This document shows positions 33,182 through 59,061 of a stretch of DNA of 64,000 bases, one piece after another. Under the pieces are notes generated by a model that worked only from the letters and a program-made list of their open reading frames with translations, did no database searches and was not told where the DNA came from. Position 1 is the first letter of the stretch. Each line of letters starts with the position of its first letter. Both the position numbers and the translations under genes were made by a program. The stretch lies in the IMG/VR virus record IMGVR_UViG_3300023313_000001, positions 124,001 to 188,000 of that record. One strand, given 5' to 3'.

Positions 33182-34807
33182 ATGAGCTACCCACTAAGAT
33201 TGAAAAACATTGGTATAACGTTAATTGATCAATACACAACCGCAAAAGCTCACCACAGAATGAGATGTGACTCATGTAACCACGTATGGTCTGCCACTCC
33301 CATATCCAAACTACAAAACTACAAAAAATACAAAACCAACGGGTGTCCTGCATGTCATACTCACCGAAAGCGAACATTAGCTGATAAGATAAATCGTAAA
33401 AATATATCCAAAATGGAATCGTTGGGTTTCTCCATACAAAGTGAATACACTACATATAAGTCACCGATAGTGGTACGTAATAATAACTGTAATCATACTT
33501 GGACTACTACTCCAGAACGTATAATAGGATCTAATGTAAAATGTAAAATATGCAACGATTTAATCAAACAAACGAGGTTTACCATCCAAAATGCCAAACG
33601 CAAACAAACTTTCAACGATACAGCATCTGATTGGGAGCGCTACAAATCAGATGTACGCAAAAAAACAGAGCAACAGTTCATCCAACACCAATCCACACTT
33701 AATCCGAACAACCATCCTCGAGGTTTGGCTGGGTTGGAAGGGGTGTATCAACTAGATCACATTATCTCTGTGAAATGGTGTTTTGAGAATGATGTACCCT
33801 ATGATAAATGTAGTGATGTATCTAATTTACAATTCATACCGTGGCAACAAAACCTGCATAAAAAGCACCGAATGATAACAGACTATATACCCAAATCAAT
33901 CCAACCATTCTTCATAGATAATCACAGTTCAGCAAATTGTTTATTTGGCATACGTAAACTATTAACAGATAATGATATTATATTTCAGAAAGATGTACGT
34001 GTGTTGAACCCCTATAAGGTAGATATATTCATACCATCTACCGACACAGCTATACGTGTGTATGATATCAACACTGAATGTGAACAAAACATAATGTCCA
34101 CCAACATTCAACGCAACATCATTAAGATAGCAGAAAAACGGAATATTAGATTGATACAATTATTCAGTGATGAATGGATATCCAACCCAGAATTAATCGC
34201 AAGTAAAATACTACACATATGTAAAATGGGTACTACTCAGACTAGAATTCATGCTAGAAAATGTACCATACGCGAAATTAACTCATCTATCAAAAATGAA
34301 TTTCTAAATATGTATCATATACAAGGAACCGATAGATCACAAATATCAATCGGAGCTTATTATGGTGATAAATTAGTGTCTGTCATGACCTTCTCCAAAC
34401 CCAGAAAGATGATGGGACGAAGCCCAGTAGCAGGAGTATGGGAATTGAGTAGGTTGACTACTGATACCCATTTTAGAATACCAGGCATTGCATCCAAACT
34501 GTTAACTTATTTTAAACGCAACCATCGTTGGTCGAAAATTTATAGTTATGCTGACGCTAGGTGGAGCATTGGTAATGTGTATGAACAATTGAAATTTGTT
34601 AAAACACATCACAACAAACCATCTTACTGGTATGTTGTGGATGGTGTACGAAAACATAGATGGGGGTACCGTAAGGATTCTATACGAGAAAGATTTCCAC
34701 ATGTGTACCATAAATCTAAAACTGAGTATGAAATGATGTTAGAATTAGACATAGATCGTATATGGGATGCGGGTACAATCTTGTATCAAATAAATCGTAA
34801 ACAATGA
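33182..34807 (+). CDS. Free-standing endonuclease: Zn-ribbons + HNH + degenerate Vsr-like + Mom/GNAT-like domain
   Basis: CDSCNHVW/CPAC ribbons; LDHIIS...NLQFIPWQQNLHK; IHARKC...HIQG...WELSRL...SYADARWS...RIWDAG. The ORF-track start lies inside the terminator, so the start was moved. Confidence 0.72.
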   Translation: MSYPLRLKNIGITLIDQYTTAKAHHRMRCDSCNHVWSATPISKLQNYKKYKTNGCPACHTHRKRTLADKINRKNISKMESLGFSIQSEYTTYKSPIVVRNNNCNHTWTTTPERIIGSNVKCKICNDLIKQTRFTIQNAKRKQTFNDTASDWERYKSDVRKKTEQQFIQHQSTLNPNNHPRGLAGLEGVYQLDHIISVKWCFENDVPYDKCSDVSNLQFIPWQQNLHKKHRMITDYIPKSIQPFFIDNHSSANCLFGIRKLLTDNDIIFQKDVRVLNPYKVDIFIPSTDTAIRVYDINTECEQNIMSTNIQRNIIKIAEKRNIRLIQLFSDEWISNPELIASKILHICKMGTTQTRIHARKCTIREINSSIKNEFLNMYHIQGTDRSQISIGAYYGDKLVSVMTFSKPRKMMGRSPVAGVWELSRLTTDTHFRIPGIASKLLTYFKRNHRWSKIYSYADARWSIGNVYEQLKFVKTHHNKPSYWYVVDGVRKHRWGYRKDSIRERFPHVYHKSKTEYEMMLELDIDRIWDAGTILYQINRKQ

Positions 34808-34847
34808 ACTGGGGATAAATACTTCAACAGGAAAATAGGAGGCTAAT

Positions 34848-35132
34848 ATGAGTTTATCATATGACCTATCAGCATATGTGGGATCTGTAATATCTGTGAT
34901 GATAGGATATAATGTAGAAATCATTGGGGAGATTGTAACTACAGATCTTCAAAGTGGATGTCTTGTAATGAAAAACATTAGAAGGTTTGATTCAGCTACT
35001 GGTAACCTAACAAAGTGGGTACACTCAATTGATGATATCACTCCAGTTGATATTGGGTTATCCCAAGATAAATTTTTTATGATACCTTCGACATCAATAT
35101 TAGCAGCATACCATGCTATAACATTTGTTTAA
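34848..35132 (+). CDS. Sm/LSm-like small protein
   Basis: YVGSVISVMIGYNVEIIGEIVTTDLQSGCLVMKNIRR fits an Sm1 pattern; GATAAATA and AGGAGG upstream. Confidence 0.55.
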   Translation: MSLSYDLSAYVGSVISVMIGYNVEIIGEIVTTDLQSGCLVMKNIRRFDSATGNLTKWVHSIDDITPVDIGLSQDKFFMIPSTSILAAYHAITFV

Positions 35133-35193
35133 CAGTTGAATTGGTAATATTGATCGCTGATAATAAATCCCTAACAGCACTACGGAGAATCAT

Positions 35194-35475
35194 ATGAATG
35201 GCATATTAGATGGAAAGTTAACAGCAGTAGAATTTGCACGGTTTTTGGAAGAGACTGTACCAGAGTTTTACGCTTATGGATTGCATCACAAGCTGACATT
35301 GATGGAAACCTTAAAAATATTACATATAGAGACCTTTTGTAATGAAAAGGATGTCTTCCAACAATCCACATCACTAAACGATGAGGAATTGCATAGGTAC
35401 CTTCACTCAATGAAGCTTGCAGTGACGTTAAATGTTAGTAGATTAGAGATTTTATACGGCGGCCTATCTAAGTAA
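35194..35475 (+). CDS. Hypothetical protein (93 aa)
   Basis: RBS GGAG; fills the intergenic gap. Confidence 0.6.
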   Translation: MNGILDGKLTAVEFARFLEETVPEFYAYGLHHKLTLMETLKILHIETFCNEKDVFQQSTSLNDEELHRYLHSMKLAVTLNVSRLEILYGGLSK

Positions 35476-35505
35476 CCACTCACACTATGTAAGAAAAGGG
35501 TTTAA

Positions 35506-35844: not shown

Positions 35845-35908
35845 CACAACCCCAGAACAAACTCACTGATAACGTCATAAATACTCCAAAACTATTGGAG
35901 CAATTTAC

Positions 35909-38856: not shown

Positions 38857-39936
38857 ATTAAAAAAATCACACACCAGGAATATGTTAATTGGATTCGCGT
38901 TAATAGACCTGAATATGAGGTAGTTGACCAGTACATCAACACCTCTACGAAAATAACCCACAGACATATTCCAACTAACCATACTTGGATGTGTTCTCCT
39001 GATAAATTCAAACGTGGAGTGTCTCATCCATATATCTCCAGAAAAACTCCAATGAGGGTAAGTCAGGATGATTATTGTGAATGGGTGAAAACAAATCGTC
39101 CAGAGTTTAAAGTATTGGGAACATATGTAAATATTAAAACAAAAATTCTTCACGTTCACACACTAACATCTACCTTATGGAATTGCACTCCAAATAAGTT
39201 CAAGAACTACCACAACCCTCCATCATTCACCAACAACGATCGTATAACTAATGAATCATACGATAAATTTTTAATAGACAATAACATTGAATTAGAACGA
39301 GTTGGGAATGTAACACGTAAGATGAACATACTAGAACATAAATCTACAAGCACAGGCGTTCGTGTTAATGTACGCCCAAGCACCATCTACCTAAACAGAC
39401 GTTATGATATAAGCAAAATACGCAATAAATCAGATTATGTAATGTGGTTAAAGACTCACAGACCAGAGTATGAACTGATTGGGGAATATACTACATCTCA
39501 TACTAAAACTATCCACAAGCACATCCCTACAGGAGTAGAATGGAATGTCAAACCCAATAATATTCAACAAGGTCAATGTAGTCCGCATCTATCAACTAAT
39601 GGATATTCAAAACGATCCATACAGTGGATGAATTTCATCAGCCAACAAGAAGGAATTGATATACAGCATGCTGAAAATGGTGGAGAGTACACTATACCAA
39701 ATGTAGGTAAGGTTGATGGATATAATGCTGACCATAACATAGTATTTGAGTACCACGGTGACTTCTGGCATGGTAACCCTGCAATTTACAACCCAACAGA
39801 TACGAATCCGATAAGTCATAAAACGTATGGTCAATTGTATGAGCACACTAAGATCCGTGATAACAATATTGTGGAACAAGGCTACACGCTAATTACGATT
39901 TGGGATAGCCAACTGGATTATATTCTGCAACCATAA
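38857..39936 (+). CDS. Free-standing Vsr/PD-(D/E)XK-like endonuclease with N-terminal repeats; probable ATT start
   Basis: W...NRPE(Y/F) repeats; KVDGYN...VFEYHGDFWHGNP...GYTLITIWDS; frame open from 38848, AGGAG 6 nt before ATT 38857. Confidence 0.7.
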   Translation: MKKITHQEYVNWIRVNRPEYEVVDQYINTSTKITHRHIPTNHTWMCSPDKFKRGVSHPYISRKTPMRVSQDDYCEWVKTNRPEFKVLGTYVNIKTKILHVHTLTSTLWNCTPNKFKNYHNPPSFTNNDRITNESYDKFLIDNNIELERVGNVTRKMNILEHKSTSTGVRVNVRPSTIYLNRRYDISKIRNKSDYVMWLKTHRPEYELIGEYTTSHTKTIHKHIPTGVEWNVKPNNIQQGQCSPHLSTNGYSKRSIQWMNFISQQEGIDIQHAENGGEYTIPNVGKVDGYNADHNIVFEYHGDFWHGNPAIYNPTDTNPISHKTYGQLYEHTKIRDNNIVEQGYTLITIWDSQLDYILQP

Positions 39937-41518: not shown

Positions 41519-42649
41519 ATGGTACATCGTAATAGGTTTATTACTAAATCTACAAAGGTGCACAATCACAAATATGATTATTCATTTGTTGAGTACAAAA
41601 ACACCCACACTCACGTAACCATCGTGTGTCCAAAACACGGAAAATTTTCCCAACTACCCATGTGTCATGTGAGAGGTGAAGGGTGTGCCCAATGTTTTGG
41701 TAACACTAGAAAAACCACAGAAGAGTTTATACATACAGCCTCTCAAATTCACAAGGGAAGGTATGACTATTCGTTGGTAGAGTATATAAATGTTAAAACT
41801 AAAGTTGACATTATTTGCAAACACCATGGGGTATTTAAACAGTCGCCAGACCACCATATTAATAAAAAAGGTGGGTGTGCTAAATGTGCGGGTAATGTTG
41901 TTAAAACTACCCCCGAATTTATATCAAAAGCCTTAAAAATCCACGGAGCTGCATACGATTATTCTGAAGTTACATACATCAATAGTAAAACACCTGTGCG
42001 GTTGAAATGCTCTAAGCATGGGATATTTACAATCACACCAGAGCAACATATACTCAAACATGGTGGATGTGGCAAATGTTCACCCACATTTCCCAGCAAT
42101 ACTACTAACTTTATTCAACGTGCCACAAACGTACATAATCACAAATATGATTATTCATTAGTTGAGTATAAAAATATCGACACTCCAATAACTATAATCT
42201 GTCCAAAACACGGAAAATTTACAACATCTCCCAAAATACATTTAAGAGGATCTCAATGTAAACAATGTTATTTAGATCAGAAAGTAGGATCATATACTGT
42301 AGATAGATTTAGATGCGATCCTGCGTTAGCTCAATCATCAGGATATGTATATGCAGTGGAGTTAACAGATTTGTCGTCCACTAAATTTATCAAGATTGGT
42401 ATATCCACCAACTATAAAAAACGCATCAATCAATACGTTAAAATGAACCCAAATGTATTACATTTACATAAATCCACTTTAAAAGATGTTTTTGGTACTG
42501 AACAACAACTATTGCAATTGTTGGCAAATGAAAAATATGATCCCCAAAACAGTTTTGGTGGACATACTGAGTGTGTCCAGTACAATGATTATACTATAAA
42601 TACTATAAACTCAACATTTAACAACCTGGTGGAACGATGTCAAACATAG
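41519..42649 (+). CDS. Free-standing GIY-YIG (T5orf172-like) endonuclease with four Cys/His repeats
   Basis: 4x H..(K/R/A)YDYS.V.Y.N..T.V...C.(K/H)HG.F...P..H....C..C; GYVYAVEL...FIKIGISTNYKKR. Confidence 0.78.
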   Translation: MVHRNRFITKSTKVHNHKYDYSFVEYKNTHTHVTIVCPKHGKFSQLPMCHVRGEGCAQCFGNTRKTTEEFIHTASQIHKGRYDYSLVEYINVKTKVDIICKHHGVFKQSPDHHINKKGGCAKCAGNVVKTTPEFISKALKIHGAAYDYSEVTYINSKTPVRLKCSKHGIFTITPEQHILKHGGCGKCSPTFPSNTTNFIQRATNVHNHKYDYSLVEYKNIDTPITIICPKHGKFTTSPKIHLRGSQCKQCYLDQKVGSYTVDRFRCDPALAQSSGYVYAVELTDLSSTKFIKIGISTNYKKRINQYVKMNPNVLHLHKSTLKDVFGTEQQLLQLLANEKYDPQNSFGGHTECVQYNDYTINTINSTFNNLVERCQT

Positions 42650-43419
42650 AAACGTACTTTTATGATGAACAGTTTAAACGATATGCTCTACAGTTTAACG
42701 CAATCTTCAGTGGATTGCAAGTAATGGTTGGCAAATCAGCAACTTCAGATGAAAAATTAATTTCAGTACCGATCATCTATGGGTCGCAAGATCGAGTAGC
42801 ATCGGCCGCAGCCCATGGACACACTCAAAACAAACACCTGAGAGTTCCCATGATGTCGTCTAACTTGGTTAATTTTGATATAGCTAATGATAGAATGAAA
42901 GGCACTGGTGCTACAAAACGTGAAGTATTTGTTCCATTGGGTGGAGTTCTTCCAAATGATGCCAAAGTAGTTCGTACCCGTATGGCAGTTCCGTACGATT
43001 TAACGTTCGATTTAAGCATATACACCAGCAATAAAGATCAGCAATTTCAGATACTGGAACAGATACTAGTGTTGTTTGATCCTATTCTCCAAATTCAAAC
43101 ATCAGAAGCACACTTAGATCCCACTAAAATATCAACTGTTGAAATTATCAGTATTAACCCAGAAGAATCATTTCCACCTGGAACTGAATCACGTGTAATT
43201 GTTACTACAATACAGTTTAAAATAGACGCATACATCACCATCCCAGCCACAGTTAAAACTGACGTTGTACAACAGATATACGCCCGCATATCCACTATAT
43301 CAGATGCTCACGTAGGCATAGTCCAATCAGATGGTACTGCAAACGCGGATATCCCTGCGTTGTATGATGAGTTAGGAATTGAACCAACCATAATTGCCAC
43401 TGCATTTATTGATAACTAA
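42637..43419 (+). CDS. gp15: Tail terminator/sheath stabiliser
   Basis: YFYDEQFKRY, VPIIYG, VPYDLTFDLSIYTSNKDQQFQILEQILVLFDP. Confidence 0.88.
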   Translation: MSNIETYFYDEQFKRYALQFNAIFSGLQVMVGKSATSDEKLISVPIIYGSQDRVASAAAHGHTQNKHLRVPMMSSNLVNFDIANDRMKGTGATKREVFVPLGGVLPNDAKVVRTRMAVPYDLTFDLSIYTSNKDQQFQILEQILVLFDPILQIQTSEAHLDPTKISTVEIISINPEESFPPGTESRVIVTTIQFKIDAYITIPATVKTDVVQQIYARISTISDAHVGIVQSDGTANADIPALYDELGIEPTIIATAFIDN

Positions 43420-45173
43420 GTTTGCTCCCAGCCCCAAACATCATTCCCGCAGTCCCATATTCGGTCATAGTTATTGACTTGCATATTTTCCCACTCAGTC
43501 ATGGTAGAATCAAACGTCGCTAGCTTGTCTTTAAGTTTATGTTTCTGAAAAACGTTCCTAGACATCAATATATTGGTATCACCTTGAATGTTAAAGTAAA
43601 AATAATTAGGTTTTGATGTGTGGGAATAAGTAAATCCAAGCTGTCCATATAATCCACCTGTATTCCAGCGCTTATCAGAATACGTTATAATTGATTTGGG
43701 GTGCTGTGATTTTAAGAAATGTTTAAATAATCTACTGGCTCCTCCCACCACTCCACAACCCATTCGGTTACTATACCGAAGTAACTCATACTCATAATTT
43801 TTGGAAAACCGACTCTTCCCGAAAGTCATACATGCAACAATTTCACCATTGTGGGATAATCCATAATTATATCTTGATCCACACGACCCCTGAATATGAT
43901 TGGCTGATAGAAAGTCTCCTTTCTCCTTAACGGTTAACTCCACTATATTACACTGTCTCGCATAAATGCGACTTGATAAACCTAATAGATTACGTATACG
44001 TGATTTACATATATCATTATTGTACACCCATTCTGATGAAAATATTTGAACTAATCTCACACCAAGCTTGTTACACATATCAGTTTTATTAATGTGGTAT
44101 CTACTGTTTTTACCAGCCAGCTCACTATGCCAACAGACTCCATTATACTCAATAGCGATGTTTAAATCGGGTATGTATATGTCTAATTCCTGTGGAGCAA
44201 TAACGTTTCTAGTGTTAGATATAACTGTTTCCGAGTAAATGACTTTAATAAACGCCAATATTTCAGACTCTGCTACAGATGTAGCAGATTTGTTGAAACT
44301 AATATTAGATCCTTCTGTTATAGTATGGATGTAAGGAAGCGTAGTGTGTAATATGTGTGCTAGTTCAGATTTTGATAAATTATACTCCTTTACAATATCC
44401 TCCACCCAAGACCTGTTAGTTAATATAGTAGATGGATCAACATCCGCATACTGTTTTCGGAGGTCATCTAACACTTCACTGAACCGCTGTGACTTGGTGA
44501 TATTGTGTTTCTGTAGATTTGCTCTTACAAAATACGTGCTAGTATTGTGGCTATCTACCAGTTGATCAATAGTTTTATTGTTAATGATGTATTCGTTATA
44601 TAAGTAATCATAGCTATCAAATAGTTTACGTAGGTGTGGATCCACCATACTCCCAGCGAAAGTGGTTGCACCATATCGTCTTAGGTTGGTGATAGCAGAC
44701 TTTGCTGCTGCTACATCATCTGTGCCATTTTTAACTTTAGTAGCTCTAATTTTAGCTGCTATCGTTGGGTCTTTAGCTGGAATTTCAACTCCATATCTAG
44801 CCATATTGGTGATGGATGCTTGGGTTCTGTTGTTGAAATTTTCGTCACCGTATCTGAGTTTTTTCGTCTCTTTTACACGTTTCACATTATTAGGATCCTT
44901 CCAAGCACAATTATGACTGCAATACTGTTTGAATACACTATTTCGATAATCATAATTAGTAACATTATCACACATACCACATGCAGGCCTGGCAGTATGA
45001 CCATCCATCAGCACTCTGATTTTTAGCTTCATATCGTCACCTTCAATAAAATCTGTTGCATCATGTATTAATGAACAGACCCCAGGATTTTTATCTAATA
45101 TACTTTGGAACTTAGGATTTAACTTATGTTTGGATGTTATTATGTTTATATTACGAAGAATGTCCAAGTTCAT
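43416..45173 (-). CDS. Free-standing endonuclease, Vsr-like + Mom/GNAT-like fusion
   Basis: CGMC/YCSHNC, RYG repeats, ELDIYIPDLNIAIEYNGVCWHS, IYARQC...YELLRY...GGASRL...TYSDKRWN...RIWDCG. Confidence 0.78.
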   Translation of the reverse strand: MNLDILRNINIITSKHKLNPKFQSILDKNPGVCSLIHDATDFIEGDDMKLKIRVLMDGHTARPACGMCDNVTNYDYRNSVFKQYCSHNCAWKDPNNVKRVKETKKLRYGDENFNNRTQASITNMARYGVEIPAKDPTIAAKIRATKVKNGTDDVAAAKSAITNLRRYGATTFAGSMVDPHLRKLFDSYDYLYNEYIINNKTIDQLVDSHNTSTYFVRANLQKHNITKSQRFSEVLDDLRKQYADVDPSTILTNRSWVEDIVKEYNLSKSELAHILHTTLPYIHTITEGSNISFNKSATSVAESEILAFIKVIYSETVISNTRNVIAPQELDIYIPDLNIAIEYNGVCWHSELAGKNSRYHINKTDMCNKLGVRLVQIFSSEWVYNNDICKSRIRNLLGLSSRIYARQCNIVELTVKEKGDFLSANHIQGSCGSRYNYGLSHNGEIVACMTFGKSRFSKNYEYELLRYSNRMGCGVVGGASRLFKHFLKSQHPKSIITYSDKRWNTGGLYGQLGFTYSHTSKPNYFYFNIQGDTNILMSRNVFQKHKLKDKLATFDSTMTEWENMQVNNYDRIWDCGNDVWGWEQT

Positions 45174-45324
45174 TTTAGATATGTTCCAGTTACCGTGTCA
45201 GATGAGTATTTATACATACAATTATATATTACTTTTTGAATACCAACAACATAAATATATTTCTACAGGTAACACCGTTTTTGTTGGTCGAACTAACTAT
45301 CAGCATACACAAAGGAGAAAAATA

Positions 45325-47082
45325 ATGCCTACACTTATATCACCAGGAGTATCCGTCACAGTAACTGATGAGTCATTCTACGTCCCGGCATCAGCCCCTA
45401 CAGTTCCTATGATAATCATAGCTACTGCAGAGAATAAATTACAACCTAATGGAATTAGTGCTGCAATAGGAACTCAAGAACATGATGTTATTCGAACTGT
45501 AACTTCACTAACTCAAAGTTCACAACTTTATGGGATTCCGAAATTCTTACAGACTGTAAGTGGTGAAGCTCAGCATGGAGACGCACGCAACGAGTATGGA
45601 TTGCTAGCATTAAACCAATTCTTAGGAATAGGTAATCGTGCGTATGTAGTCCGAGCAAACGTGAATTTAAACGATGACAGAAACGACATCATCAACATGT
45701 GGCTAGCCAGAACTAATGCAGCTGCTATCAATATTGAAGTACTATCCCAAGAATTCATTAACGAATTTAATGCTGCTAATGGGTATGTTACAGGCAATCC
45801 CCTATTCAAAGAGACTATTACTCGAGTAGAACTAGTTACACTAATGAACCAGGTAATGGTTGCTGTGTATGACAGTTATAACTTTAATAGCACTATTTTT
45901 GAAACAGATTTCGAGTCTAACCACAACCCACTGCTAGGTGGCACGGCTGCCCTCAACGTGTATGATGCAACATACACTACTGTAGTAGCATCGTTCCTAG
46001 GGTTTGAGGGAGCTGCTCTTGACTGGGAAACTAACAGCTTGGGATCGTTTGTTGGTCATACTACCGAATGGCTACCATCAGAAGCAAATACATTCTTGTC
46101 GGGCTTAGCTGATGACTTCGCATTCACTGTTGAATTTCTTAATTCAACAAGTCTAGGTGCAAATGATCCAGCTCGTCGATCAGCCATCGTTACCGCATTA
46201 CAAGCAACTGTAAATTCCCCAGATATTAGATCTGAAGCATACGAATTCAACTTAGTCTTATGTCCAGGATACCACGAACTCGTTGATGAAATGGCTACCT
46301 TAGTAACCGATATTTCGAATGAAGCTGTGGTAATAGCAGATTCTCCAATGAACATGGATCCTGATGCTGTTGTAGTATGGATGGATGATCCAGTCAGTGG
46401 TCGAGTATACAACGCAAATGTTGCATACTACTACAGTCATGGGTATGGCTCTAATTTAGATGGCACCAACGTTCTCGGAGCAGCATCTGGAGTTGCATTG
46501 CGTACCATTGCATTTAGTGACGATACTACTAGTGCAGTTTGGTTTGCACCTGCTGGTGCCCAACGTGGCGTAGTCACTGGCGTATCTCAAATGGGTTATT
46601 ACACTGGAATTGCTGGATCAGCGACCCAGTTCAATGAAGCGGTACTTAACGTAGGTCAACGCGACAATATGTATAAGGACCCTACCAAACTAAACCCAAT
46701 AACATTTTTACCAGGTCGTGGTATTGTAGTGATGGGTCAAAAAACGTCTCCAGCAACCGCTAGCGCACTAGATCGTATAAATGTTGTTAGATTGATGGCT
46801 CACATCAAACGTCAATTACGCAAAAATACATTTGCGTTTGTTTTCGAACCTAACGATCAGTTAACCAGAGATAATCTCAAAGCGATGGTGGACAACTTCC
46901 TAGGAGATTTGGTTGTTCGTAGAGGCTTATATGATTTCGCCTCGGTATGCGATGAGTCAAATAATACTCCAGACAGAGTAGATCGAAATGAAATGTACAT
47001 AGACATAGCACTCAAACCTGTTAAGGCAGCCGAGTTCATATATGTGCCAATCCGCGTTCTATCAACTGGTGCTAGTTTGTAA
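45325..47082 (+). CDS. gp18: Contractile tail sheath protein (585 aa)
   Basis: MPTLISPGVSVTVTDES, WFAPAGAQRG, MGQKT...SALDRINVVRL, FVFEPND, CDESNNTP, KPVKAAEFIY; RBS AAGGAG and CATAAATA 45250 fix the start. Confidence 0.95.
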   Translation: MPTLISPGVSVTVTDESFYVPASAPTVPMIIIATAENKLQPNGISAAIGTQEHDVIRTVTSLTQSSQLYGIPKFLQTVSGEAQHGDARNEYGLLALNQFLGIGNRAYVVRANVNLNDDRNDIINMWLARTNAAAINIEVLSQEFINEFNAANGYVTGNPLFKETITRVELVTLMNQVMVAVYDSYNFNSTIFETDFESNHNPLLGGTAALNVYDATYTTVVASFLGFEGAALDWETNSLGSFVGHTTEWLPSEANTFLSGLADDFAFTVEFLNSTSLGANDPARRSAIVTALQATVNSPDIRSEAYEFNLVLCPGYHELVDEMATLVTDISNEAVVIADSPMNMDPDAVVVWMDDPVSGRVYNANVAYYYSHGYGSNLDGTNVLGAASGVALRTIAFSDDTTSAVWFAPAGAQRGVVTGVSQMGYYTGIAGSATQFNEAVLNVGQRDNMYKDPTKLNPITFLPGRGIVVMGQKTSPATASALDRINVVRLMAHIKRQLRKNTFAFVFEPNDQLTRDNLKAMVDNFLGDLVVRRGLYDFASVCDESNNTPDRVDRNEMYIDIALKPVKAAEFIYVPIRVLSTGASL

Positions 47083-47112
47083 TATAAGCTTGACCACAAT
47101 ATCAATATAGAG

Positions 47113-47151
47113 TATAAATACCTCAATAAAGTGATTTATTGAGGTATTTTT
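47113..47151 (+). promoter_or_regulatory. Late promoter overlapping a 15-bp hairpin that covers the downstream RBS (may also terminate sheath mRNA)
   Basis: TATAAATA 47113-47120; AAATACCTCAATAAA-GTGA-TTTATTGAGGTATTT 47116-47149. Confidence 0.75.
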
Positions 47152-47153
47152 AT

Positions 47154-48752
47154 ATGCAGGAAACGATACCATGCCAGATATGTGGAAAACACATGAAATG
47201 TATTGGGTGGAGACATTTACAACAACACAACACCACAGTTGACATATACAAACAACAATTTCCACAATCTCCTTTAAGGTCAGAAGCATCTACAGCTAGA
47301 AAATCGAAGTCTGCAAAACTTGCAAACGCCTCACGCAAGGGAGTAGCTAGATCTGATGTTGTGAAAACAAAAATATCACAAGCAAATAAAGGGAAGGATG
47401 CTTGGAATAAAGGCATAGGTATGTCTGACACTCAAAAACAAACACTTTCACAAACCAAGAAAGACCAATACGCAAATGGATCTACTATCCACTGGAATAC
47501 AGGCAATATAACTCCAAACGACGTCAAGAAAAAAATATCAGAAACAGCACTATCCCAATGTCGTACATACAGTGAACCTAGTAAACAAAAAAGACAATCT
47601 ACTATGCAGCAAAAATACGACGATGGATGGGTTCATCCTAGTCATCGTCCAGAGGTGCTTCAGCAACGCAAAAAAACAATGTTCGAACGATACGGCGTAG
47701 ATAATTTTATGCAACAACACATCAACCATTCGGTATTGTTAAAACTTAACGACCGTACCTGGTTAGAAGACCAACACATCACCCAACATAAACCAATCAC
47801 TCAAATTTGTAAGGATTTAGGATTACATTGGAAAAACAGCAATGCTATGGTTAAATCCCGGTTGCTTAAATTTGATATACCACAACAATATGACTTCTCA
47901 TGCTCTTATCCTGAACGTGAACTTAGAGACCTATTAACGGAATGGAATATACCCTTCATAGGGAATGATAGGACTCAGATTAAACCCAAAGAATTGGATA
48001 TATACATTCCATCCAAGTCAATAGCTATTGAATATTGTGGATTGATATGGCACTCGGATGCGTTTGTAGATAAGAACTACCACAAATTAAAAATGGAGCT
48101 ATGTGCTGCAGTAGGAATTAAGTTAATTACTATTTTTGAAGACGAGTGGTTGCATTGTCGTGATATAGTGATAAGTAAACTTCAACAGATACTTGGAATA
48201 TCAAACGATCAACGTATTTTTGCTCGCAACTGTAGTGTTATAGAAATTGAACACCAAACTGCTAAAGAGTTTCTGAACACTAATCACATTCAAGGATATG
48301 GACCATCTAGTATCAACTTAGGGTTGCATTATAATTCGGAATTAGTGGCAGTGGCAGCATATAAACGTGACGGATCCAGTGACTTTATACTAAACAGATT
48401 TGCAACATCGTGTAGTGTGATTGGCGGATTTACTAAGCTTGAACGGTACTTTGATCGTAATTACCATCCTACAATGGTGTCAACATTTGCTGACATGAGA
48501 TGGAGTATTGGAGACTTATACAAAAATACTGGATACACCTTAGTTAACCTGTTGCGTCCAGATTATGCATACATCGACAAATCTTCATTCACTAGAATAC
48601 ATAAATTCAACTTTCGACACCACAATTTACATAATATGTTGGACGTATACGACCCATTACTTAGCGAAACCGAGAATACCAGAGCTAATGGGATACACCG
48701 AATTTATAACTGTGGTTTAATGAAGTTTCAACGTACTAATATGTCCGAATAG
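47154..48752 (+). CDS. Free-standing endonuclease: C2H2 finger + NUMOD3-like + Vsr-like + Mom/GNAT-like
   Basis: CQICGK...HLQQH; KISQANKGKDAWNKG; ELDIYIPSKSIAIEYCGLIWHS; IFARNC...TFADMRWS...RIYNCG. Confidence 0.78.
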   Translation: MQETIPCQICGKHMKCIGWRHLQQHNTTVDIYKQQFPQSPLRSEASTARKSKSAKLANASRKGVARSDVVKTKISQANKGKDAWNKGIGMSDTQKQTLSQTKKDQYANGSTIHWNTGNITPNDVKKKISETALSQCRTYSEPSKQKRQSTMQQKYDDGWVHPSHRPEVLQQRKKTMFERYGVDNFMQQHINHSVLLKLNDRTWLEDQHITQHKPITQICKDLGLHWKNSNAMVKSRLLKFDIPQQYDFSCSYPERELRDLLTEWNIPFIGNDRTQIKPKELDIYIPSKSIAIEYCGLIWHSDAFVDKNYHKLKMELCAAVGIKLITIFEDEWLHCRDIVISKLQQILGISNDQRIFARNCSVIEIEHQTAKEFLNTNHIQGYGPSSINLGLHYNSELVAVAAYKRDGSSDFILNRFATSCSVIGGFTKLERYFDRNYHPTMVSTFADMRWSIGDLYKNTGYTLVNLLRPDYAYIDKSSFTRIHKFNFRHHNLHNMLDVYDPLLSETENTRANGIHRIYNCGLMKFQRTNMSE

Positions 48753-48828
48753 TTAAATCAATAGATCTTTCAACTCAACGCTAGTATAGTATAATATCAA
48801 ATGTGTGAAATATTTAGGAGATATTGCT

Positions 48829-49143
48829 ATGGACATTAACATCCAACTACAAGAACTACATAATAAAAACGATACTATAGGGAATAGTATCAATGAAGGC
48901 ATAATGCAAGCATTCAACAATCTGGATGATTCTGATAGAGAATACATTCAAAATGAGATCCAAGAAGGAGTGATGATTGCATTGGTAGATCACTTCATGG
49001 CAAACGAGATTACAGACTTCCGAGCAACATGTGACTCGACTAACAATCAAGATGTCGCAAATACCATCAATGTAGATGTGTGGTTTACTATGGCTGGAGA
49101 GACATCCGAAACCCATATATCACGGACATGTACCATCTGTTGA
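48829..49143 (+). CDS. Stand-alone protein resembling the tail-sheath C-terminal domain
   Basis: EITDFRATCDSTNNQDVANTINVDVWF vs sheath GLYDFASVCDESNNTPDRVDRNEMYIDIAL; RBS AGGAG. Confidence 0.55.
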   Translation: MDINIQLQELHNKNDTIGNSINEGIMQAFNNLDDSDREYIQNEIQEGVMIALVDHFMANEITDFRATCDSTNNQDVANTINVDVWFTMAGETSETHISRTCTIC

Positions 49144-49168
49144 CATAATCGGTTGATTTGAGTAGACT
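49140..49168 (+). promoter_or_regulatory. Sigma70-type promoter
   Basis: TTGACA-N17-TAGACT. Confidence 0.65.
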
Positions 49169-49231
49169 TATGTTCTCCCAAATTGTTCAACGTAACAATT
49201 TGGATTAACTCACTAACCGAAGGTAATACTC

Positions 49232-49468
49232 ATGACATCAAGTAATAACTCTAATAGTAAATCCAACAAGACCACTGTAATTAACCGAATCACTGCGTAT
49301 CTGGGCGGTCGAAAAACCAATGCAACCACTGTACAAATTATAAAAGCTGTTGGTGGTAATGTAGGAACGGTTAAAGCTCGATTATCCGACCTAACTCGCT
49401 CAGGAACTATCACTCGTGTGCTCAAGCAAAATAATGGCAAAAATGTGCCTACGTTCACTTTAAACTAA
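49232..49468 (+). CDS. Small basic winged-helix DNA-binding protein
   Basis: RITAYL...ATTVQIIKAVGGNVGTVKARLSDLTRSGTITRV...TFTL. Confidence 0.65.
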   Translation: MTSSNNSNSKSNKTTVINRITAYLGGRKTNATTVQIIKAVGGNVGTVKARLSDLTRSGTITRVLKQNNGKNVPTFTLN

Positions 49469-49504
49469 TCCAACTCCACAAGTAACCGCTGTATAAAAAG
49501 ACAA

Positions 49505-51181
49505 CTACATGTTGTCTTTTTTATTCCACACCCATACTGAATTACCACAATCCCAGATCCTGTCATAGCCATTGTTTACCATATTATCCCATTCCGTCAA
49601 TTCTACATCAAACATCTGTAGTCTATCTTTCAACTTATGTTTTTGGAATTGCATTCTACTGAACAAAACCAACCGATCTGAATTGTGGAAATACATATAA
49701 TTCGGTGGACTATAATGACTGAAACTGAAACTCAATTGCCCATACATAGCTCCAGTGTTCCACGATCTATCAGCGTATGACACTACAGACGATGGGTGGA
49801 TTTGTCTAATAAAATGTTTGAATAATTTAGATGCCCCACCAACCACTGTGGAGTCAATTTTTGAACAATACCTCAATAACTCGTACTCGTATTTGTTAGA
49901 GAATCTACTTTTACCAAACGTCATACATGCCACCAACTCACTACCATACATTAACCCGTATCGCACATGAGACTTACATGCCCGCTGTAGGTGGTTAACA
50001 TCTACAAAAATATTAGCAGCCTTAGAGCTAAGTTCTACAATAGTAGTTGACCGTCCATAGATTCTACTACCTGATACTCCCAATTTAGCTCGGATCCTTG
50101 ATTTTACCACAGACTGGTGCAGCACCCACTGGTCCTGGCGTAAATGTATCAACTGTATTCCTTGAGTATTACACATTTTGGTCTTCATCAAATGGTAATC
50201 TTTCGTCTTTCCTTTTGAGTCAGAATGCCAATATATTCCATTAAACTCTATTGCGATACCATGGTCTGGCAACACTATATCTAACTCATATGGTTTAATA
50301 ATACTCCGAACATGTCTATTTACTGTTACATTTAATGACTCCAAAAAAGAACAAACTTCGTTTTCTCCAGTAGAGTTGGATGATGACACCGGTAAATCGA
50401 AATATTTGAATCTGGACGTTAATAATGGTTGTGACACGTTTAATGTTTTCGCAATTTCTGTCAACGATCGTCCCTGCATATGTTGATCCAATAACCATTT
50501 CGGGTCATGCAGTTTTTCATATACATCTATCCAGTCATCTCCATTAAATCCCGTATATCTTGCCCAGGTAGCAGCACGTTCATATAACTCTCCCGAATGT
50601 AGGTGGTGTACACGAGTATGAGAGATCTGTTCTCGAACAGAATCCGTCATGGCATGTGTGGTACCGTAACGTTCCATACATGTTTGTTGTTTTTTATCTT
50701 GAGATTGAGTAGACGACACATTCCATTCGGTACCATACTTACGTAAATTAGTTTGCTTTAACTTAGCTTGCACTTGGGTAGACTGTAAAGCATGCTTTAC
50801 TCCCAACACGTTAAATCTATCTTCAGCCACCCTATGGGTCATTTTAAAATAATTGTCTACACCATAATGGTTCATAGTCGTCTGTTTACGCTTAGTTAAT
50901 AAATCACCACCCTCATGTACACATTTATTTGAGCAAAATTTGCGATATTCGTGTGTTGAATCATTCCAAGTAACTGTGCCAACCTTACAATGGGAACACA
51001 CTACCAACTCAGATTCCTTATGTATAATATGCCACATTCGCTGTCTCAGCCCAGATTTTATTGGTAGAAACAAGGTAGCCTTTTTAATAACATCATATTT
51101 TACGGTATTTAACTTGATCCAAGACCTAAAATTTGACAATGCTGATAGTTCTATAATTATTTCTTGTAATTTGTGGTCCAT
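49505..51181 (-). CDS. Free-standing endonuclease, Vsr-like + Mom/GNAT-like fusion
   Basis: CSHC/FCSNKC, (K/R)YG repeats, ELDIVLPDHGIAIEFNGIYWHS, ACMTFGKSRFS.KYEYELLRY, SYADRSWN, RIWDCG. Confidence 0.78.
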   Translation of the reverse strand: MDHKLQEIIIELSALSNFRSWIKLNTVKYDVIKKATLFLPIKSGLRQRMWHIIHKESELVVCSHCKVGTVTWNDSTHEYRKFCSNKCVHEGGDLLTKRKQTTMNHYGVDNYFKMTHRVAEDRFNVLGVKHALQSTQVQAKLKQTNLRKYGTEWNVSSTQSQDKKQQTCMERYGTTHAMTDSVREQISHTRVHHLHSGELYERAATWARYTGFNGDDWIDVYEKLHDPKWLLDQHMQGRSLTEIAKTLNVSQPLLTSRFKYFDLPVSSSNSTGENEVCSFLESLNVTVNRHVRSIIKPYELDIVLPDHGIAIEFNGIYWHSDSKGKTKDYHLMKTKMCNTQGIQLIHLRQDQWVLHQSVVKSRIRAKLGVSGSRIYGRSTTIVELSSKAANIFVDVNHLQRACKSHVRYGLMYGSELVACMTFGKSRFSNKYEYELLRYCSKIDSTVVGGASKLFKHFIRQIHPSSVVSYADRSWNTGAMYGQLSFSFSHYSPPNYMYFHNSDRLVLFSRMQFQKHKLKDRLQMFDVELTEWDNMVNNGYDRIWDCGNSVWVWNKKDNM

Positions 51182-51239
51182 AGCATAAATACCTCATATA
51201 ACCAAACAGTGCTACATATTATATAGGAGCAGTTAACCA

Positions 51240-55005: not shown

Positions 55006-55755
55006 ATGAATAAAACTCTCAACACGTTATTAGCTCACTTCACTTCGGAACAAAACTGGTGGGACCAGTTCCATCTAGCATACCTGATGAATCCCACAGC
55101 ATTCATAGAAGACTGTATCACACTAAATACAGCCCCTATACAATTACTTCAGCATCAACGTGACCTCGTTGAAATATATGAATATCATGACCATGTGTAT
55201 GTTGCATCTGCTAGACAAGTGGGGTTATCTACAATAAACAATGCATTTATGCTTTGGCAATGTGTATTCCAACACGACACATCTATTCAAATTTTTGCAC
55301 AAGACGATACTGGAGCATGTGATCTGAGAACAATACGGCAAATGTATGACTCTCTACCTAACCAAGTACGAGCTAGAGTGAAAATTCAACTTCATAAAAC
55401 TACTCATGGAATACTATCGTTCGACAATGGGTCCTCTATCACTGTACTGTCAACCAGTTTCAATGCTCTGCATGGCATCCCACCAGCAGATGTACTACAC
55501 ATAGTACGTCCATCTATGTTTTCTACCAAAAACTTACAAGAAGTAGAACAAGCGTTGATACACCCAACTGTTCATGCTGGTGGATCAATACAAGTCACCG
55601 ATTGCATCAATGCTAACCTAGAGTTAATAAACACGCATGCTATGTTTGCTTGTAAAATTCCATGGAACGTGGTGCCTGGACGAGATCAACAATTCAAAGA
55701 CGACACTATTCGCAGAATAGGACAGCAAGCCTGGAATGACGACTATGGGGATTAA
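55006..55755 (+). CDS. Degenerate paralog of the terminase large-subunit ATPase domain
   Basis: SARQVGLST (Walker A K->L), FDNGSSI, VLHIVRP at the Walker B position, IPWNVVPGRDQQFK. Confidence 0.75.
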   Translation: MNKTLNTLLAHFTSEQNWWDQFHLAYLMNPTAFIEDCITLNTAPIQLLQHQRDLVEIYEYHDHVYVASARQVGLSTINNAFMLWQCVFQHDTSIQIFAQDDTGACDLRTIRQMYDSLPNQVRARVKIQLHKTTHGILSFDNGSSITVLSTSFNALHGIPPADVLHIVRPSMFSTKNLQEVEQALIHPTVHAGGSIQVTDCINANLELINTHAMFACKIPWNVVPGRDQQFKDDTIRRIGQQAWNDDYGD

Positions 55756-55757: not shown

Positions 55758-57443
55758 GTGGCTAAAAATATAAATATAAAAAAAGCATACACTACCCAAG
55801 ACCTCTCAACTGAACAGATTACAGAAATCGACAGATGTATGTACGGGTGCATTAACCAGACCACTGGCATCCAGGAATGTGGGCCTATATACTTTGCCAA
55901 AAATTATGTTAGAATCCAACACCCCAAACGTGGAGATGTACCATTTCTATTATATCCATACCAAGAAAAAATGATGGACACATATCTCAACAACAATAAA
56001 GTGGTGGTGTTATCTGCTCGCCAAACAGGAAAGGAACAGCCACATACTGCACGTATAGCCACTCCTACCGGTTGGGTCACTATGGGGGACATTCAGCCTG
56101 GGGATACCGTATTGACTCCTGATGGTAGCACGTCAACAGTCATCCAAAAACATCCTCAAGGAACTAAGCAAGTCTATCGTATTACGTTTGACGATGGGTC
56201 GTTTGCTGAATGTGGAATTGATCATTTATGGAGTTGTAATATTCATGATAGATTATCTTCCGACACTAGCACCAGTACAGTGCCAACATCTGAATTAATT
56301 ACAATGATGGATAACGATCACGTATACCAATATCGCATAGACATACCTCTAGTGGATGTAGTCAATTTTAATGAGCAACAATTGACAATGGACCCGTTTG
56401 AGCTTGGTGTGCAATTGCGAACAAATACATCTTCACAATCTCACATACCAGAAGTATACTTACGTAGTTCACCAAACCAACGTACAGCATTATTGAACGG
56501 ATTGATATCCAATAAATCCATCAGCAAGAAATTTACTGTTTCTCATATAACCTCAAAACAACTACGGTCAGACATCCAACAACTAGTATGGAGTCTAGGT
56601 GGTACCTGTTCATATAATACAACAAGTGAACAAGACGATACTGTGTACGAACTGTATATAGAACCACCATCACTATCAGGTACACTTAAACGAACAATTA
56701 TATCTATCAATGCTGTGAGACACGAACAATCATCGTGTATATCAATCGATCACCCAAAACAGTTGTATATCACAGACAATTTCACTGTCACACATAACAG
56801 CATAACATCCGCCATATTTTTATTGTGGTTTGCTATGTTTAATCCTGATAAGACATTATTAATCGCAGCCAACAAAAACGATCTAGCCATTGAGATGATT
56901 CAACGTATCCAGTACGCATATGAGTTCTTACCCATGTGGTTGAAACCTGGGGTTACTGACGACGGTTGGAATAAACATAGTATAAAATTTGATAACAAAT
57001 CTCGCATTGTTTCTACTGCAACATCTGCTAACTCTGGTCGTGGTATGTCTATATCGCTTTTGTATTTGGATGAATTTGCGTTTGTAGCACCAAACATTCA
57101 AGAAGAATTTTGGACCTCAATTCTACCAACATTATCTACTGGTGGTGCTTGTATAATGTCGTCCACACCAAACGGAGCAGTGGATAAGTTTGCTAGCATT
57201 TGGCGTGCAGCCAATATGGAAAATAATACTGATGGTCTGTTGTTTAAGGCTATTGAAGTCAAATGGGACGAACCACCAGGACGAGGCGAACAATTTAAGC
57301 GTGATCATATTGTAATGTTGGGTGAACTTAAATGGGCTCAGGAATATGAGTGTTGCTCAGGTGATACTGTAGTAACATTACAGGATGCTGTTGGTAATAT
57401 ATTGCAAAAAACGCTAAAGGAACTATACAGTGAGTTGGGTTGA
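55758..57443 (+). CDS. gp17: Terminase large subunit, N-terminal ATPase part, with cis intein and split-intein IntN
   Basis: LYPYQ, SARQTGK|intein|SITSA, GRGMSISLLYLDEFAFV, SSTPNG, WAQEYE|CCSGDT... Confidence 0.93.
   Translation: MAKNINIKKAYTTQDLSTEQITEIDRCMYGCINQTTGIQECGPIYFAKNYVRIQHPKRGDVPFLLYPYQEKMMDTYLNNNKVVVLSARQTGKEQPHTARIATPTGWVTMGDIQPGDTVLTPDGSTSTVIQKHPQGTKQVYRITFDDGSFAECGIDHLWSCNIHDRLSSDTSTSTVPTSELITMMDNDHVYQYRIDIPLVDVVNFNEQQLTMDPFELGVQLRTNTSSQSHIPEVYLRSSPNQRTALLNGLISNKSISKKFTVSHITSKQLRSDIQQLVWSLGGTCSYNTTSEQDDTVYELYIEPPSLSGTLKRTIISINAVRHEQSSCISIDHPKQLYITDNFTVTHNSITSAIFLLWFAMFNPDKTLLIAANKNDLAIEMIQRIQYAYEFLPMWLKPGVTDDGWNKHSIKFDNKSRIVSTATSANSGRGMSISLLYLDEFAFVAPNIQEEFWTSILPTLSTGGACIMSSTPNGAVDKFASIWRAANMENNTDGLLFKAIEVKWDEPPGRGEQFKRDHIVMLGELKWAQEYECCSGDTVVTLQDAVGNILQKTLKELYSELG
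56034..56798 (+). mobile_element. Class-3 cis intein (255 aa) with decayed LAGLIDADG domain, inserted in Walker A
   Basis: EQPHTARIATPTGW...CGIDHLW...SSCISID...FTVTHN|S. Confidence 0.88.
57351..57440 (+). mobile_element. Split intein N-fragment (30 aa)
   Basis: CCSGDTVVTLQDAVGNILQKTLKELYSELG-stop after extein QEYE. Confidence 0.85.
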
Positions 57444-59061
57444 TGTTTATAAGTCATTAACATACTTAGTTGATGAGTTTAAACACAAACCTCCATCAAG
57501 TAACTTTAGTAGGTGGCGAACTGAGGAATTCCACTTATTGAAAGAAGCTACATCATTTTTATCAGATGCTGCATCTGCCAGTGAGCGGTTGTGGTACATT
57601 GATCATAGACAACACCATGCAACTTTGTGCAGAATATGTAATAAAAACTTATTATCGTGGATTAATAAAGAACGAGATTACAGAGCCACATGCGGTAAAT
57701 GTAATGGTAAACTACCTGCAACTGCAGCTAAACGCAAAGCAACTATGCTGGAAAGATATGGTGTTGAAAGTTATACTCAGCATGACCAATTCAATGACAA
57801 ACGTATATCTACCAATCAACAACAGTATGGAACTGATTGGGGACTTCAATGTCCACACATTCAAGATAAACGCAAAAGTACCATGATGGAACGATATGGT
57901 GCTGAAAACACTTTACAGTCGCCTGTACTAAAACAAAAAGTCATTAATACTCTTCAACAAAAATATAATGTCAAACATAATTCACAAACAACACATTGGC
58001 GTGAGTCTGTAAGGCAAACTTTTCTTGAAAACCTGGGTGTTGAACATAATACCCAACTTCAAATAGACCCAGTATCGTTAATTAAGTTAAATGATCGGAA
58101 TTATCTAAAATCAAAACATATCACTGAACAAATTCCACTACATGTTATAGCCAAGGAATTACAAGTTAACCAAACCACAGTAGCCAATTATTTTAGAAAA
58201 CACGATATAACTATTCAACGATTTCCGAAATCATATGGTGAGCGAACACTAAGCGAATTTATCCAACAACTAGGAATAATTGTAATAAATGGAGATAGAT
58301 CAATAATCCAACCATACGAATTAGATATTGTATTACCTGAACATAAAATAGCCATAGAATACTGTGGTTTATTCTGGCACTCTGAAACTTGTGGAAAAGA
58401 CAAACGATACCATGAAATGAAAATGAAGTTAGCTAATGCAGCAGGGTACAGACTGTTAACAATATATGAAGATGAGTGGGTTAAACGAACCAACCAAGTC
58501 AAGAATAAAATTAAACATATGTTAGGAATGTCTGTGGATAAAGTATATGCTAGAAAATGTACTGTCGAACTAGTAGACAACAAGCAGGAATTTTTCGATA
58601 AACACCACATCCAAGGATCAGGTCCAGGCAGCATAACATTCCAGTTAGTGGTGAATGAACGACCTTGTGCCATGATGACATTTATTCAATGTAAAAACCA
58701 ATCTTTCTATTTGAACAGATATGCAACATCAATGAGTGTCGTCGGTGGTTTTAGTAAATTGTTGAAACACTTCGAAAAAAATATTAAATGGTCTAAAATA
58801 ATATCATTTGCAGACCTGAGGTGGAGTGATGGTAATTTATATCGTCAGTGTGGTTTTGAACTGGATGGAATAATCCCACCTGATTATTATTACTCACCCA
58901 ATGGCGTAGATCGATACCATAAATCTAATTATAGACATGCACAATTACCTAAGCGATTAGCTAACTACGATCCAACCAAAACTGAATGGGAAAATTGTGA
59001 TGTCAATGGAATTCATCGTATTTGGGATTGTGGTAAAATGAGGTTTGTGAGATATGCCTGA
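57430..59061 (+). CDS. Endonuclease (Vsr-like + Mom/GNAT-like) between the two split-intein halves
   Basis: CRIC/CGKC, ERYG repeats, ELDIVLPEHKIAIEYCGLFWHS, VYARKC...SFADLRWS...RIWDCG; overlaps both flanking ORFs. Confidence 0.8.
   Translation: MSWVDVYKSLTYLVDEFKHKPPSSNFSRWRTEEFHLLKEATSFLSDAASASERLWYIDHRQHHATLCRICNKNLLSWINKERDYRATCGKCNGKLPATAAKRKATMLERYGVESYTQHDQFNDKRISTNQQQYGTDWGLQCPHIQDKRKSTMMERYGAENTLQSPVLKQKVINTLQQKYNVKHNSQTTHWRESVRQTFLENLGVEHNTQLQIDPVSLIKLNDRNYLKSKHITEQIPLHVIAKELQVNQTTVANYFRKHDITIQRFPKSYGERTLSEFIQQLGIIVINGDRSIIQPYELDIVLPEHKIAIEYCGLFWHSETCGKDKRYHEMKMKLANAAGYRLLTIYEDEWVKRTNQVKNKIKHMLGMSVDKVYARKCTVELVDNKQEFFDKHHIQGSGPGSITFQLVVNERPCAMMTFIQCKNQSFYLNRYATSMSVVGGFSKLLKHFEKNIKWSKIISFADLRWSDGNLYRQCGFELDGIIPPDYYYSPNGVDRYHKSNYRHAQLPKRLANYDPTKTEWENCDVNGIHRIWDCGKMRFVRYA

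Follow-up and report, generated by a model that had tools for sequence, protein, structure and literature searches.

The window analysed here is a stretch of 64,000 nucleotides (nt), bases 124001-188000 of the 229.5-kb IMG/VR virus record IMGVR_UViG_3300023313_000001, which comes from a microbial-mat metagenome and belongs to an uncultured jumbo T4-like phage (CheckV completeness ~65%). It carries five paralogous genes, called Hef-like genes 1 to 5 below, whose products join an N-terminal DNA-binding region to a Vsr-like nuclease block and to a C-terminal domain related to the Mom protein of phage Mu. An earlier note on this DNA, made without database searches, had claimed five such open reading frames (ORFs) beside core virion genes. 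All five are indeed open, intact paralogues, and the neighbours are there as well (prohead protease, major head protein (MCP), neck, sheath stabiliser, sheath, tube, head closure, TerS and TerL); in PHROG scans they form, with scaffold and gp15-like genes, a T4-type structural module in which all five genes sit. A megablast search with gene 2 and with the 7.5 kb from neck to gp15 matched nothing in the phage collection, and the phage therefore has no close cultured relative. The five genes are:

33182..34807, plus strand: Hef-like gene 1 (protein P0001, 541 aa), with the major head protein gene on one side and ORF 35506 on the other; degenerate Vsr-like block at nt ~33965-34216, Mom-like domain at nt 34220-34801; matches phrog_559 (E 2.6e-75) and phrog_1384 'Mom-like DNA modification protein' (E 4e-7).
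43416..45173, minus strand: Hef-like gene 2 (P0002, 585 aa), flanked by the gp15-like gene and the sheath gene, both on the opposite strand; its nuclease block covers nt ~43986-44276 and its Mom-like domain nt 43422-43991; phrog_3339 E 1.8e-118, C-terminal-block profile E 2.1e-88.
47154..48752, plus strand: Hef-like gene 3 (P0003, 532 aa), downstream of the sheath gene; a ROS/MucR-like finger and NUMOD3 precede the nuclease block (nt ~47916-48197) and the Mom-like domain (nt 48186-48740).
49505..51181, minus strand: Hef-like gene 4 (P0004, 558 aa), upstream of the tube gene, which is on the opposite strand; DUF7487 repeats precede the nuclease block (nt ~50081-50365) and the Mom-like domain (nt 49517-50089); phrog_3339 E 1.9e-130.
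57430..59061, plus strand: Hef-like gene 5 (P0005, 543 aa), between the two TerL halves; DUF7487 repeats and a helix-turn-helix precede the nuclease block (nt ~58237-58515) and the Mom-like domain (nt 58513-59052).

In a MAFFT alignment (A1) the five proteins align across the entire C-terminal ~300 residues, and both shared parts that had been described are visible in it: the nuclease block, with the consensus P.ELDI.IP..(5)..IAIEY.G..WHS...F.DEW, and the C-terminal block of ~190 aa, with the consensus ARxC...FL..NHIQG...ELxR...VVGGASKL...SYADxRW..G.LY...P.Y.Y...RIWDCG. Alternative starts exist for gene 1 (33065) and gene 3 (TTG at 47139). All five proteins are assigned to phrog_3339 'homing endonuclease', with E values between 1e-66 and 1e-130. 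When the record is searched with a profile of the C-terminal block, nine intact copies come up at E values of 5e-61 to 2e-88, which chance would not give, and five of them are in the window; the earlier count of five is thus right for the window but too low for the record. The other four lie at C1:65493-67301, 72889-74577, 106922-108814 and 197849-199519. The N-termini had been called different from gene to gene. This is true of P0001 and P0003, whereas P0002, P0004 and P0005 have a zinc ribbon and a DUF7487 repeat array in common (DUF7487 scores of 77.1 bits in P0005 and 42.3 bits in P0004). P0003 has a ROS/MucR-like finger and NUMOD3 (21.7 bits, cut-off 20.4), and P0001 has treble-clef zinc ribbons, seen as weak zinc-ribbon and treble-clef matches. 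A separate, modular N-terminal DNA-binding region, which marks EDxHD homing endonucleases, is present. A methyltransferase family match was not found in the domain scan of the five proteins.

The nuclease had been assigned as Vsr/PD-(D/E)XK-like, and the Vsr side of this assignment is borne out. Residues 255-372 of P0005 match the catalytic domain of I-Bth0305I (3r3p) in a phmmer search (E 4.1e-5). An AlphaFold model of the nuclease plus the C-terminal unit (pLDDT 96.2, pTM 0.89) matches 3r3p_B in Foldseek with an E value of 2.6e-4, a TM score of 0.78 and a root-mean-square deviation of 2.9 A over 100 columns at 24% identity; the two domains are predicted to pack as one rigid unit. I-Bth0305I is a characterised, dimeric homing enzyme and the prototype of the Vsr-like 'EDxHD' homing endonucleases, and phage Hef-type enzymes are listed as members of this group (PMC3239194). 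With the active-site Asp (Vsr D51), the invariant Glu and the His (Vsr H69) as criterion, the ELD, IAIE and WHS residues are intact in eight of the nine copies, namely P0002 to P0005 and all four outside the window. The exception is P0001, in which the block is degenerate (KVD...IRVYDINTECE) and both the Glu and the WHS His are gone. Upstream of that block, residues ~190-235 of P0001 resemble an HNH motif by eye (LDHIISVKW...SNLQFIPWQQNLHKKH), a by-eye likeness without a Pfam HNH match. P0001 could represent a nuclease swap inside a Hef-like scaffold.

The positions of the genes are best judged against related phages. A scan with the sheath protein retrieved 73 viral loci of ~50-60% identity, onto which the window genes were mapped. 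The gene order is kept in these relatives (MCP, small ORF, neck, gp14-like, gp15-like, sheath, tube, tube-like, head closure, TerS, TerL), and the junctions that hold Hef-like genes in the window are short or uninterrupted in most of them:

Sheath-tube junction: <400 bp in 65/69 related loci (typically ~30 bp); 4157 bp in the window, with genes 3 and 4.
47083..51239: the 4.16-kb sheath-tube insert, made up of gene 3, ORF 48805-49143 and gene 4.
gp15-sheath junction: <400 bp in 41/47 related loci; 1710 bp in the window, with gene 2.
MCP-next ORF junction: <400 bp in 8/9 related loci; 2464 bp in the window, with gene 1.
TerL ATPase and nuclease parts: contiguous in 30/30 related loci; split in the window, with gene 5 between them.

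A few relatives (L037, L054, L057/L058) carry Hef-like genes at the same junctions, with up to three between sheath and tube. The exact empty site is not alignable at the DNA level, the relatives being only ~50-60% identical in protein. Optional inserts at hot spots beside the most conserved genes are the pattern of free-standing homing endonuclease genes. The four copies outside the window fit this pattern: one is next to topoisomerase II, one next to nrdB, one follows UvsX and one separates the two halves of the DNA polymerase gene.

At the fifth site the endonuclease gene does not lie between two genes but within one. The order on one strand is N-extein plus the N half of an intein (IntN), Hef-like gene, C half of the intein (IntC) plus C-extein (slashes in sequences mark junctions):

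55758..57353, plus strand: TerL N-extein (ATPase domain), in ORF 55758-57443; Terminase_6N at residues 350-536.
57354..57443, plus strand: N half of the predicted split intein, 29 aa (CSGDTVVTLQ...SELG), with which the TerL-N ORF ends; a stop codon follows.
59054..59413, plus strand: C half of the predicted split intein, 120 aa (ends ...VISHN/CEF), at the start of the TerL-C ORF.
59414..60175, plus strand: TerL C-extein (nuclease domain); Terminase_6C at residues 167-323.

The upstream TerL ORF ends in ...WAQEYEC/CSGDTVVTLQDAVGNILQKTLKELYSELG and a stop codon, and gene 5 overlaps it by 14 nt; the downstream ORF in turn overlaps gene 5 by 8 nt. In the latter, the 120 residues that end in ...NSVISHN/CEF precede the Terminase_6C domain, so that the locus shows a Cys1 and a His-Asn followed by Cys+1. 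The N half is unaligned in all 30 relatives. The C half matches the consensus engineered intein CatC (6dsl_B, E 3.1e-9), and its match to Pfam Intein_splicing stays below the cut-off (21.7 vs 35.8 bits, E 2e-4). An Rfam scan of the whole window gave no match, and a group I intron as the cause of the split TerL or of any insert was not found in it. The TerL product would need to be rejoined by a predicted atypical split intein of the GOS/AceL/Cat-TerL type. Such a 'fractured gene' arrangement, with the same order on one strand, was described by Dassa et al. 2009, who found one terminase locus with an unusually long C part of 122 aa and Vsr-like endonucleases in half of their loci (PMC2677866). 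GOS-TerL and AceL-TerL are characterised relatives of the fractured terminase intein (PMC11766414); they and Cat-TerL share with the locus described here the host protein TerL, the Cys1 and the HN/C junctions. The lengths of the halves, 29 aa and 120 aa, fall within the 25-37 aa (N) and 104-122 aa (C) of known atypical TerL inteins. Different from these, the locus is complete within a long phage contig and its intervening endonuclease is of the Hef/Mom type.

Further features were seen in and beside TerL. A stretch of ~255 aa (56034-56798, residues 93-347 of ORF 55758-57443) directly follows the Walker-A GK of TerL (..ARQTGK/EQPHT ... FTVTHN/SITS..) and is lacking in about 25 relatives. Its last two residues are His-Asn, with Ser next, as in an intein; its first residue is not Cys or Ser, and it has a weak match to Pfam Hint_2 (E 0.003, below the cut-off); it may be a class-3-type intein. 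Just upstream of TerL, a 249-aa ORF (55006-55755) hits the TerL PHROG phrog_5989 in the part that is also matched by the ATPase domain of the true TerL, and is a TerL-like fragment or paralogue. Similar extra TerL-like matches upstream of TerL were seen in L019, L028 and L053.

Two of the copies outside the window have neighbours of their own interest. One (L078:10390-12078, minus strand) abuts nrdB (L078:12081-13175, minus strand), the gene which the Hef of phage U5 is reported to cleave, as cited in PMC2988022. Another splits a family-B DNA polymerase gene (L079:1421-3019, 3023-4915 and 4867-6540; record C1:105320-110439). A recognisable split intein was not found at the polymerase break, and the C-terminal half of the polymerase has an intein-like insert in motif C (..AYGD/SVAAKSS...VLVHN/TDSVYF).

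The combination of nuclease and Mom-like domain is widespread in phages. In tblastn searches the unit was found in 414-417 phage records; 395 of the 417 cover at least 80% of it, at 28-42% identity. Among the carriers are Campylobacter phages (up to 12 places per record), Klebsiella phages RaK2 and K64-1 ('hef'), Dickeya phages of the LIMEstone type, Acinetobacter, Vibrio and Pseudomonas phages, coliphages of T-even size, Bacillus phage AR9 and Lak megaphages. The records are annotated as Hef, 'Hef-like homing endonuclease' or 'homing endonuclease EDxHD', and in several Acinetobacter phages as 'putative nuclease/acetyltransferase protein'. Hef-like enzymes named in this way (Campylobacter CP220, CPt10 and CP81; Klebsiella RaK2 and K64-1; Dickeya LIMEstone F-LimIII, VII, VIII and X; Acinetobacter 133 and KARL-1; Bacillus AR9) and Hef of U5 share with the window genes the nuclease and C-terminal domain family, the presence in many copies, the free-standing state and the position beside conserved genes, tail tube, terminase and nrdB among them. 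In contrast to them, one copy here is inside a split intein and one has a degenerate nuclease block. The window genes are <60% identical to anything in the phage collection; they are new, divergent members of the known Hef-like family in a new phage. The fusion, the Mom homology, the nuclease homology and the fractured-gene arrangement have each been described already. The earlier note had taken the genes for selfish elements, a view backed by presence and absence at the same junctions in relatives and by the fractured TerL gene, and we are highly confident that they are mobile endonuclease genes of the Hef type.

The nuclease of I-Bth0305I, which is homologous by sequence and fold and is likewise preceded by DNA-binding modules of the NUMOD type, forms the C-terminal end of that protein, whereas the proteins described here run on into the ~190-aa domain. 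This domain had been likened by eye to Mom and the GNAT fold. A structural comparison had been proposed, and the absence of a GNAT fold had been named as fatal to the idea. The idea withstood this test: a single-domain AlphaFold model (pLDDT 95.9) has the GNAT fold, and its top Foldseek match is Mom of phage Mu (8bv8, E 6.2e-7). The Pfam and PHROG matches and a profile-profile alignment agree with Mom as well. Against the Pfam Mom model (PF25680, gathering cut-off 27.1 bits) the C-terminal domain of P0001 scores 26.4 and that of P0003 19.2 bits, and P0002, P0004 and P0005 gave no match. Homologues in the family reach or exceed the cut-off (P0075 36.1, P0013 30.7 and P0017 27.1 bits). A first-look search of the record with PF25680 had returned 0 matches, which reflects an insensitive filter: the family's own profile finds nine. 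In hhalign, the family profile (A2) aligns to a profile of 33 Mom homologues (A4) with 88% probability and an E value of 3.1e-6 over 121 columns. In PDB sequence searches, neither the single domain nor profile A2 retrieved Mom; the matches were only weak ones to GNATs (E 0.07-0.5). A preliminary hhalign run of A2 against the single Mom sequence (3% probability) mis-paired Mom W48 with the invariant Phe of the family; this mapping was discarded and replaced by the profile-profile run. Taken together, it is very likely that the C-terminal domain is a GNAT domain of the Mom family.

Mom of Mu works as a dimer and uses Gly-tRNA(Gly), not acyl-CoA, as co-substrate to move glycine to N6 of adenine; H58, R111, S124, D149, R151 and Y159 were shown or proposed to be necessary for this activity (PMC13219725). 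The profile alignment pairs H30, E67, R70, S84, D104, R106 and Y113 of the family with H58, E108, R111, S124, D149, R151 and Y159 of Mom. Conservation was counted over 129 sequences, the nine paralogues and 120 database homologues. The Arg equivalent to R111 and the Tyr equivalent to Y159 are present in all 129, the Asp (D149) in 116, the second Arg (R151) in 111 and the Ser (S124) in 103, and the six equivalents as a set are kept at 80-100%. P0001, P0002 and P0005 have all six. In P0001, the loss of the Vsr residues next to intact Mom residues suggests that selection acts on the GNAT part irrespective of Vsr-type cutting. Beyond the aligned core, which ends at Mom residue 178, the model has a helical insert at residues ~142-169; the helix-turn-helix-like insert of Mom (175-209) is not alignable by sequence. 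Compared with Mom, the domain thus has the same fold, profile homology and the equivalents of all seven paired residues, but only ~14-18% identity, and all five window copies stay below the Pfam cut-off. Mom of Mu is a stand-alone anti-restriction gene regulated by Com, whereas the domain described here is one part of a fusion with a nuclease and DNA-binding arrays.

Stand-alone Mom-like proteins were considered as independent enzymes and rejected. The apparent cases are fragments of broken Hef-like genes in other metagenomic phages: L075:969-2369 is a decaying gene whose single frame is broken by an in-frame stop immediately ahead of the Mom part, and in L077:1884-4630 a 417-aa ORF interrupts the gene between nuclease and Mom parts. 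This Mom subfamily is therefore essentially always tied to the nuclease.

Altogether, we favor, with a probability of roughly 0.6, that the five genes are free-standing homing genes of the Hef type that have invaded junctions beside or within highly conserved genes and combine a modular N-terminal array, an EDxHD nuclease and a Mom-family GNAT domain. By analogy to Hef and I-Bth0305I, the array would bind a long site in a conserved neighbouring gene of an insert-free relative during mixed infection. As in other members of the family, the nuclease would then cut this site and recombinational repair would copy the endonuclease gene across. Judging from the conserved residues, the Mom-like domain may be catalytically competent and would put an aminoacyl or acyl group on a DNA adenine at or near the bound site; that it acts on DNA in this way has, in our view, a little less than an even chance. 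Such a mark might shield the resident genome from its own nuclease. This self-protection is the role we prefer, but as a weakly supported one it is doubtful. Still somewhat less probable is the full form of the idea, in which the enzymes would be bifunctional, the Mom-like domain putting an aminoacyl- or acyl-derived mark on an adenine inside the long recognition site of the same enzyme and the carrier genome thereby being immune to the fused nuclease.

Several points weigh against the favoured explanation. The link of U5 Hef to this exact nuclease-Mom architecture comes through the annotations of phages of T-even size. The only sequencing run that holds the phage, probably its source sample, a microbial mat, shows no insert-free variant; contigs of the run compared over 42400-48300 had no joints or variants. 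About 10-20% of the family members are substituted at the equivalents of S124, D149 or R151; P0003 has a Thr in place of S124, and P0004 has a Ser in place of R151 (ADRSW), with an Arg one position earlier. Two other Mom residues are not conserved: in hhalign the dimer contact W48 falls on a position that varies in the family, and Y59 is paired with Ile/Leu. Finally, a mark made in trans would also protect the co-infecting target genome, and self-protection needs extra assumptions.

Of the other explanations, the one that survives best is a conflict system of the type proposed by Iyer et al. 2021, in which the Mom domains would momylate the phage's own DNA genome-wide against host restriction and against the fused nuclease, the nuclease would degrade unmodified host or superinfecting DNA and mobility would be incidental. 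That paper (PMC7824862) describes fusions of Mom with restriction endonucleases (REase) in jumbo phages, with the same architecture and in multiple copies, five of them in PA5oct, and proposes for them a role like restriction-modification. It reads the two domains as such a pair and, in the text accessible, does not discuss homing, whereas the comparative data given here show the behaviour of mobile inserts. The conserved catalytic residues suit such a system as well, nine paralogues with differing DNA-binding arrays would widen its sequence coverage, and minimal nuclease-Mom proteins of ~280-330 aa exist without long N-terminal arrays. Against this, most related phages are without the genes at the same junctions and the few that have them carry them at the same hot spots. 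Furthermore, a TerL split inside an intein and a split DNA polymerase are a signature of homing and not of conserved defence, and the prototype Hef is reported as homing-proficient (PMC2988022). We regard the conflict system as unlikely, although it is compatible with homing and both could apply.

A little further down in probability is the view that the Mom-like domain is a non-catalytic module, be it a clamp on DNA, a reader that flips bases or a surface for oligomerisation, which positions a nuclease with a single active site for double-strand cleavage and makes no chemical modification. The rigid packing predicted by the two-domain model would suit such a role, as would the dimeric state of both I-Bth0305I and Mom of Mu, the loss of S124, D149 or R151 equivalents in some members and the retention of the two-domain scaffold in P0001 after its Vsr catalytic residues were lost. 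However, conservation of six residues of Mom catalysis in 129 diverse members is unexpected for a purely structural part, and the dimer residue W48 is not conserved. A homodimer prediction for the domain gave no answer (score 0.04) and counts neither way.

That the GNAT domain acts on a substrate other than DNA, such as aminoacyl-tRNA or a host protein, in the manner of TacT-type toxins or RNA polymerase-modifying GNATs and in the service of addiction or host takeover, is highly improbable, given that its specific kinship in Pfam, PHROG and hhalign is with Mom and that it hardly ever occurs without modules for DNA binding and DNA cutting fused to it.

The same proteins have so far appeared in two literatures, as 'Hef-like homing endonucleases' in phage genome papers and as 'Mom-REase' fusions in comparative genomics. 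With the chemistry of Mom solved in 2026 (structure 8bv8), the role of the GNAT domain in hundreds of phage genomes becomes directly testable, and the six mapped residues are ready point mutants. If the bifunctional reading were true, the genes would encode a 'homing restriction-modification' unit in one polypeptide, with an immunity that is chemical and not due to differences in target-site sequence, and this would be only the second biochemical context known for DNA aminoacylation of the Mom type. Enzymes of Type IIG/IIC (MmeI, BcgI), in which nuclease, base-modifying domain and DNA-recognition module are also part of one polypeptide, are an analogy only: they use a methyltransferase dependent on S-adenosylmethionine together with a PD-(D/E)XK nuclease in cellular defence, whereas here the second domain is a GNAT and the behaviour is that of a homing element. 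The TerL locus, as a complete natural break of the atypical split-intein type with its endonuclease in place, is useful for intein engineering and for models of fractured genes.

Beside the Hef-like genes, the window contains two more endonuclease-like ORFs that have no Mom-like domain (38989-39936 and 41519-42649). They are of another type, match phrog_559/681 and flank the gp14-like gene, and the second carries DUF723 and T5orf172 domains. The junctions which they occupy are often short in relatives: the neck-gp14-like junction is <400 bp in 10/32 related loci and the gp14-like-gp15 junction in 39/45. A paralogue of ORF 41519-42649 lies at L078:6645-7772, where it separates two topoisomerase II genes.

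The window genes are open under table 11. ARAGORN finds 19 tRNA genes in the record, among them one with the anticodon CUA (amber-reading, labelled Pyl), plus a tmRNA-like gene; the positions given for this observation, C1:640-717 and C1:50682-51024, are outside the window. A tRNA-Gly was not found among these 19 tRNAs of the ~65%-complete record. The T4 late-promoter-like motif TATAAATA occurs at 45207-45214 (minus strand) and 47113-47120 (plus strand), in both cases ~30 nt ahead of a Hef-like gene (gene 2 and gene 3, respectively). The scaffold and gp15-like genes have it upstream too; it is not enriched across the window, with 11 occurrences found vs 8.1 expected. In the sheath gene of many relatives, a stretch of 0.3-1 kb that is lacking here stands unaligned between residues ~220-280 of the sheath of this phage (for example L056:8627-9681 and L062:8606-9357) and may be an extra domain or another insert.

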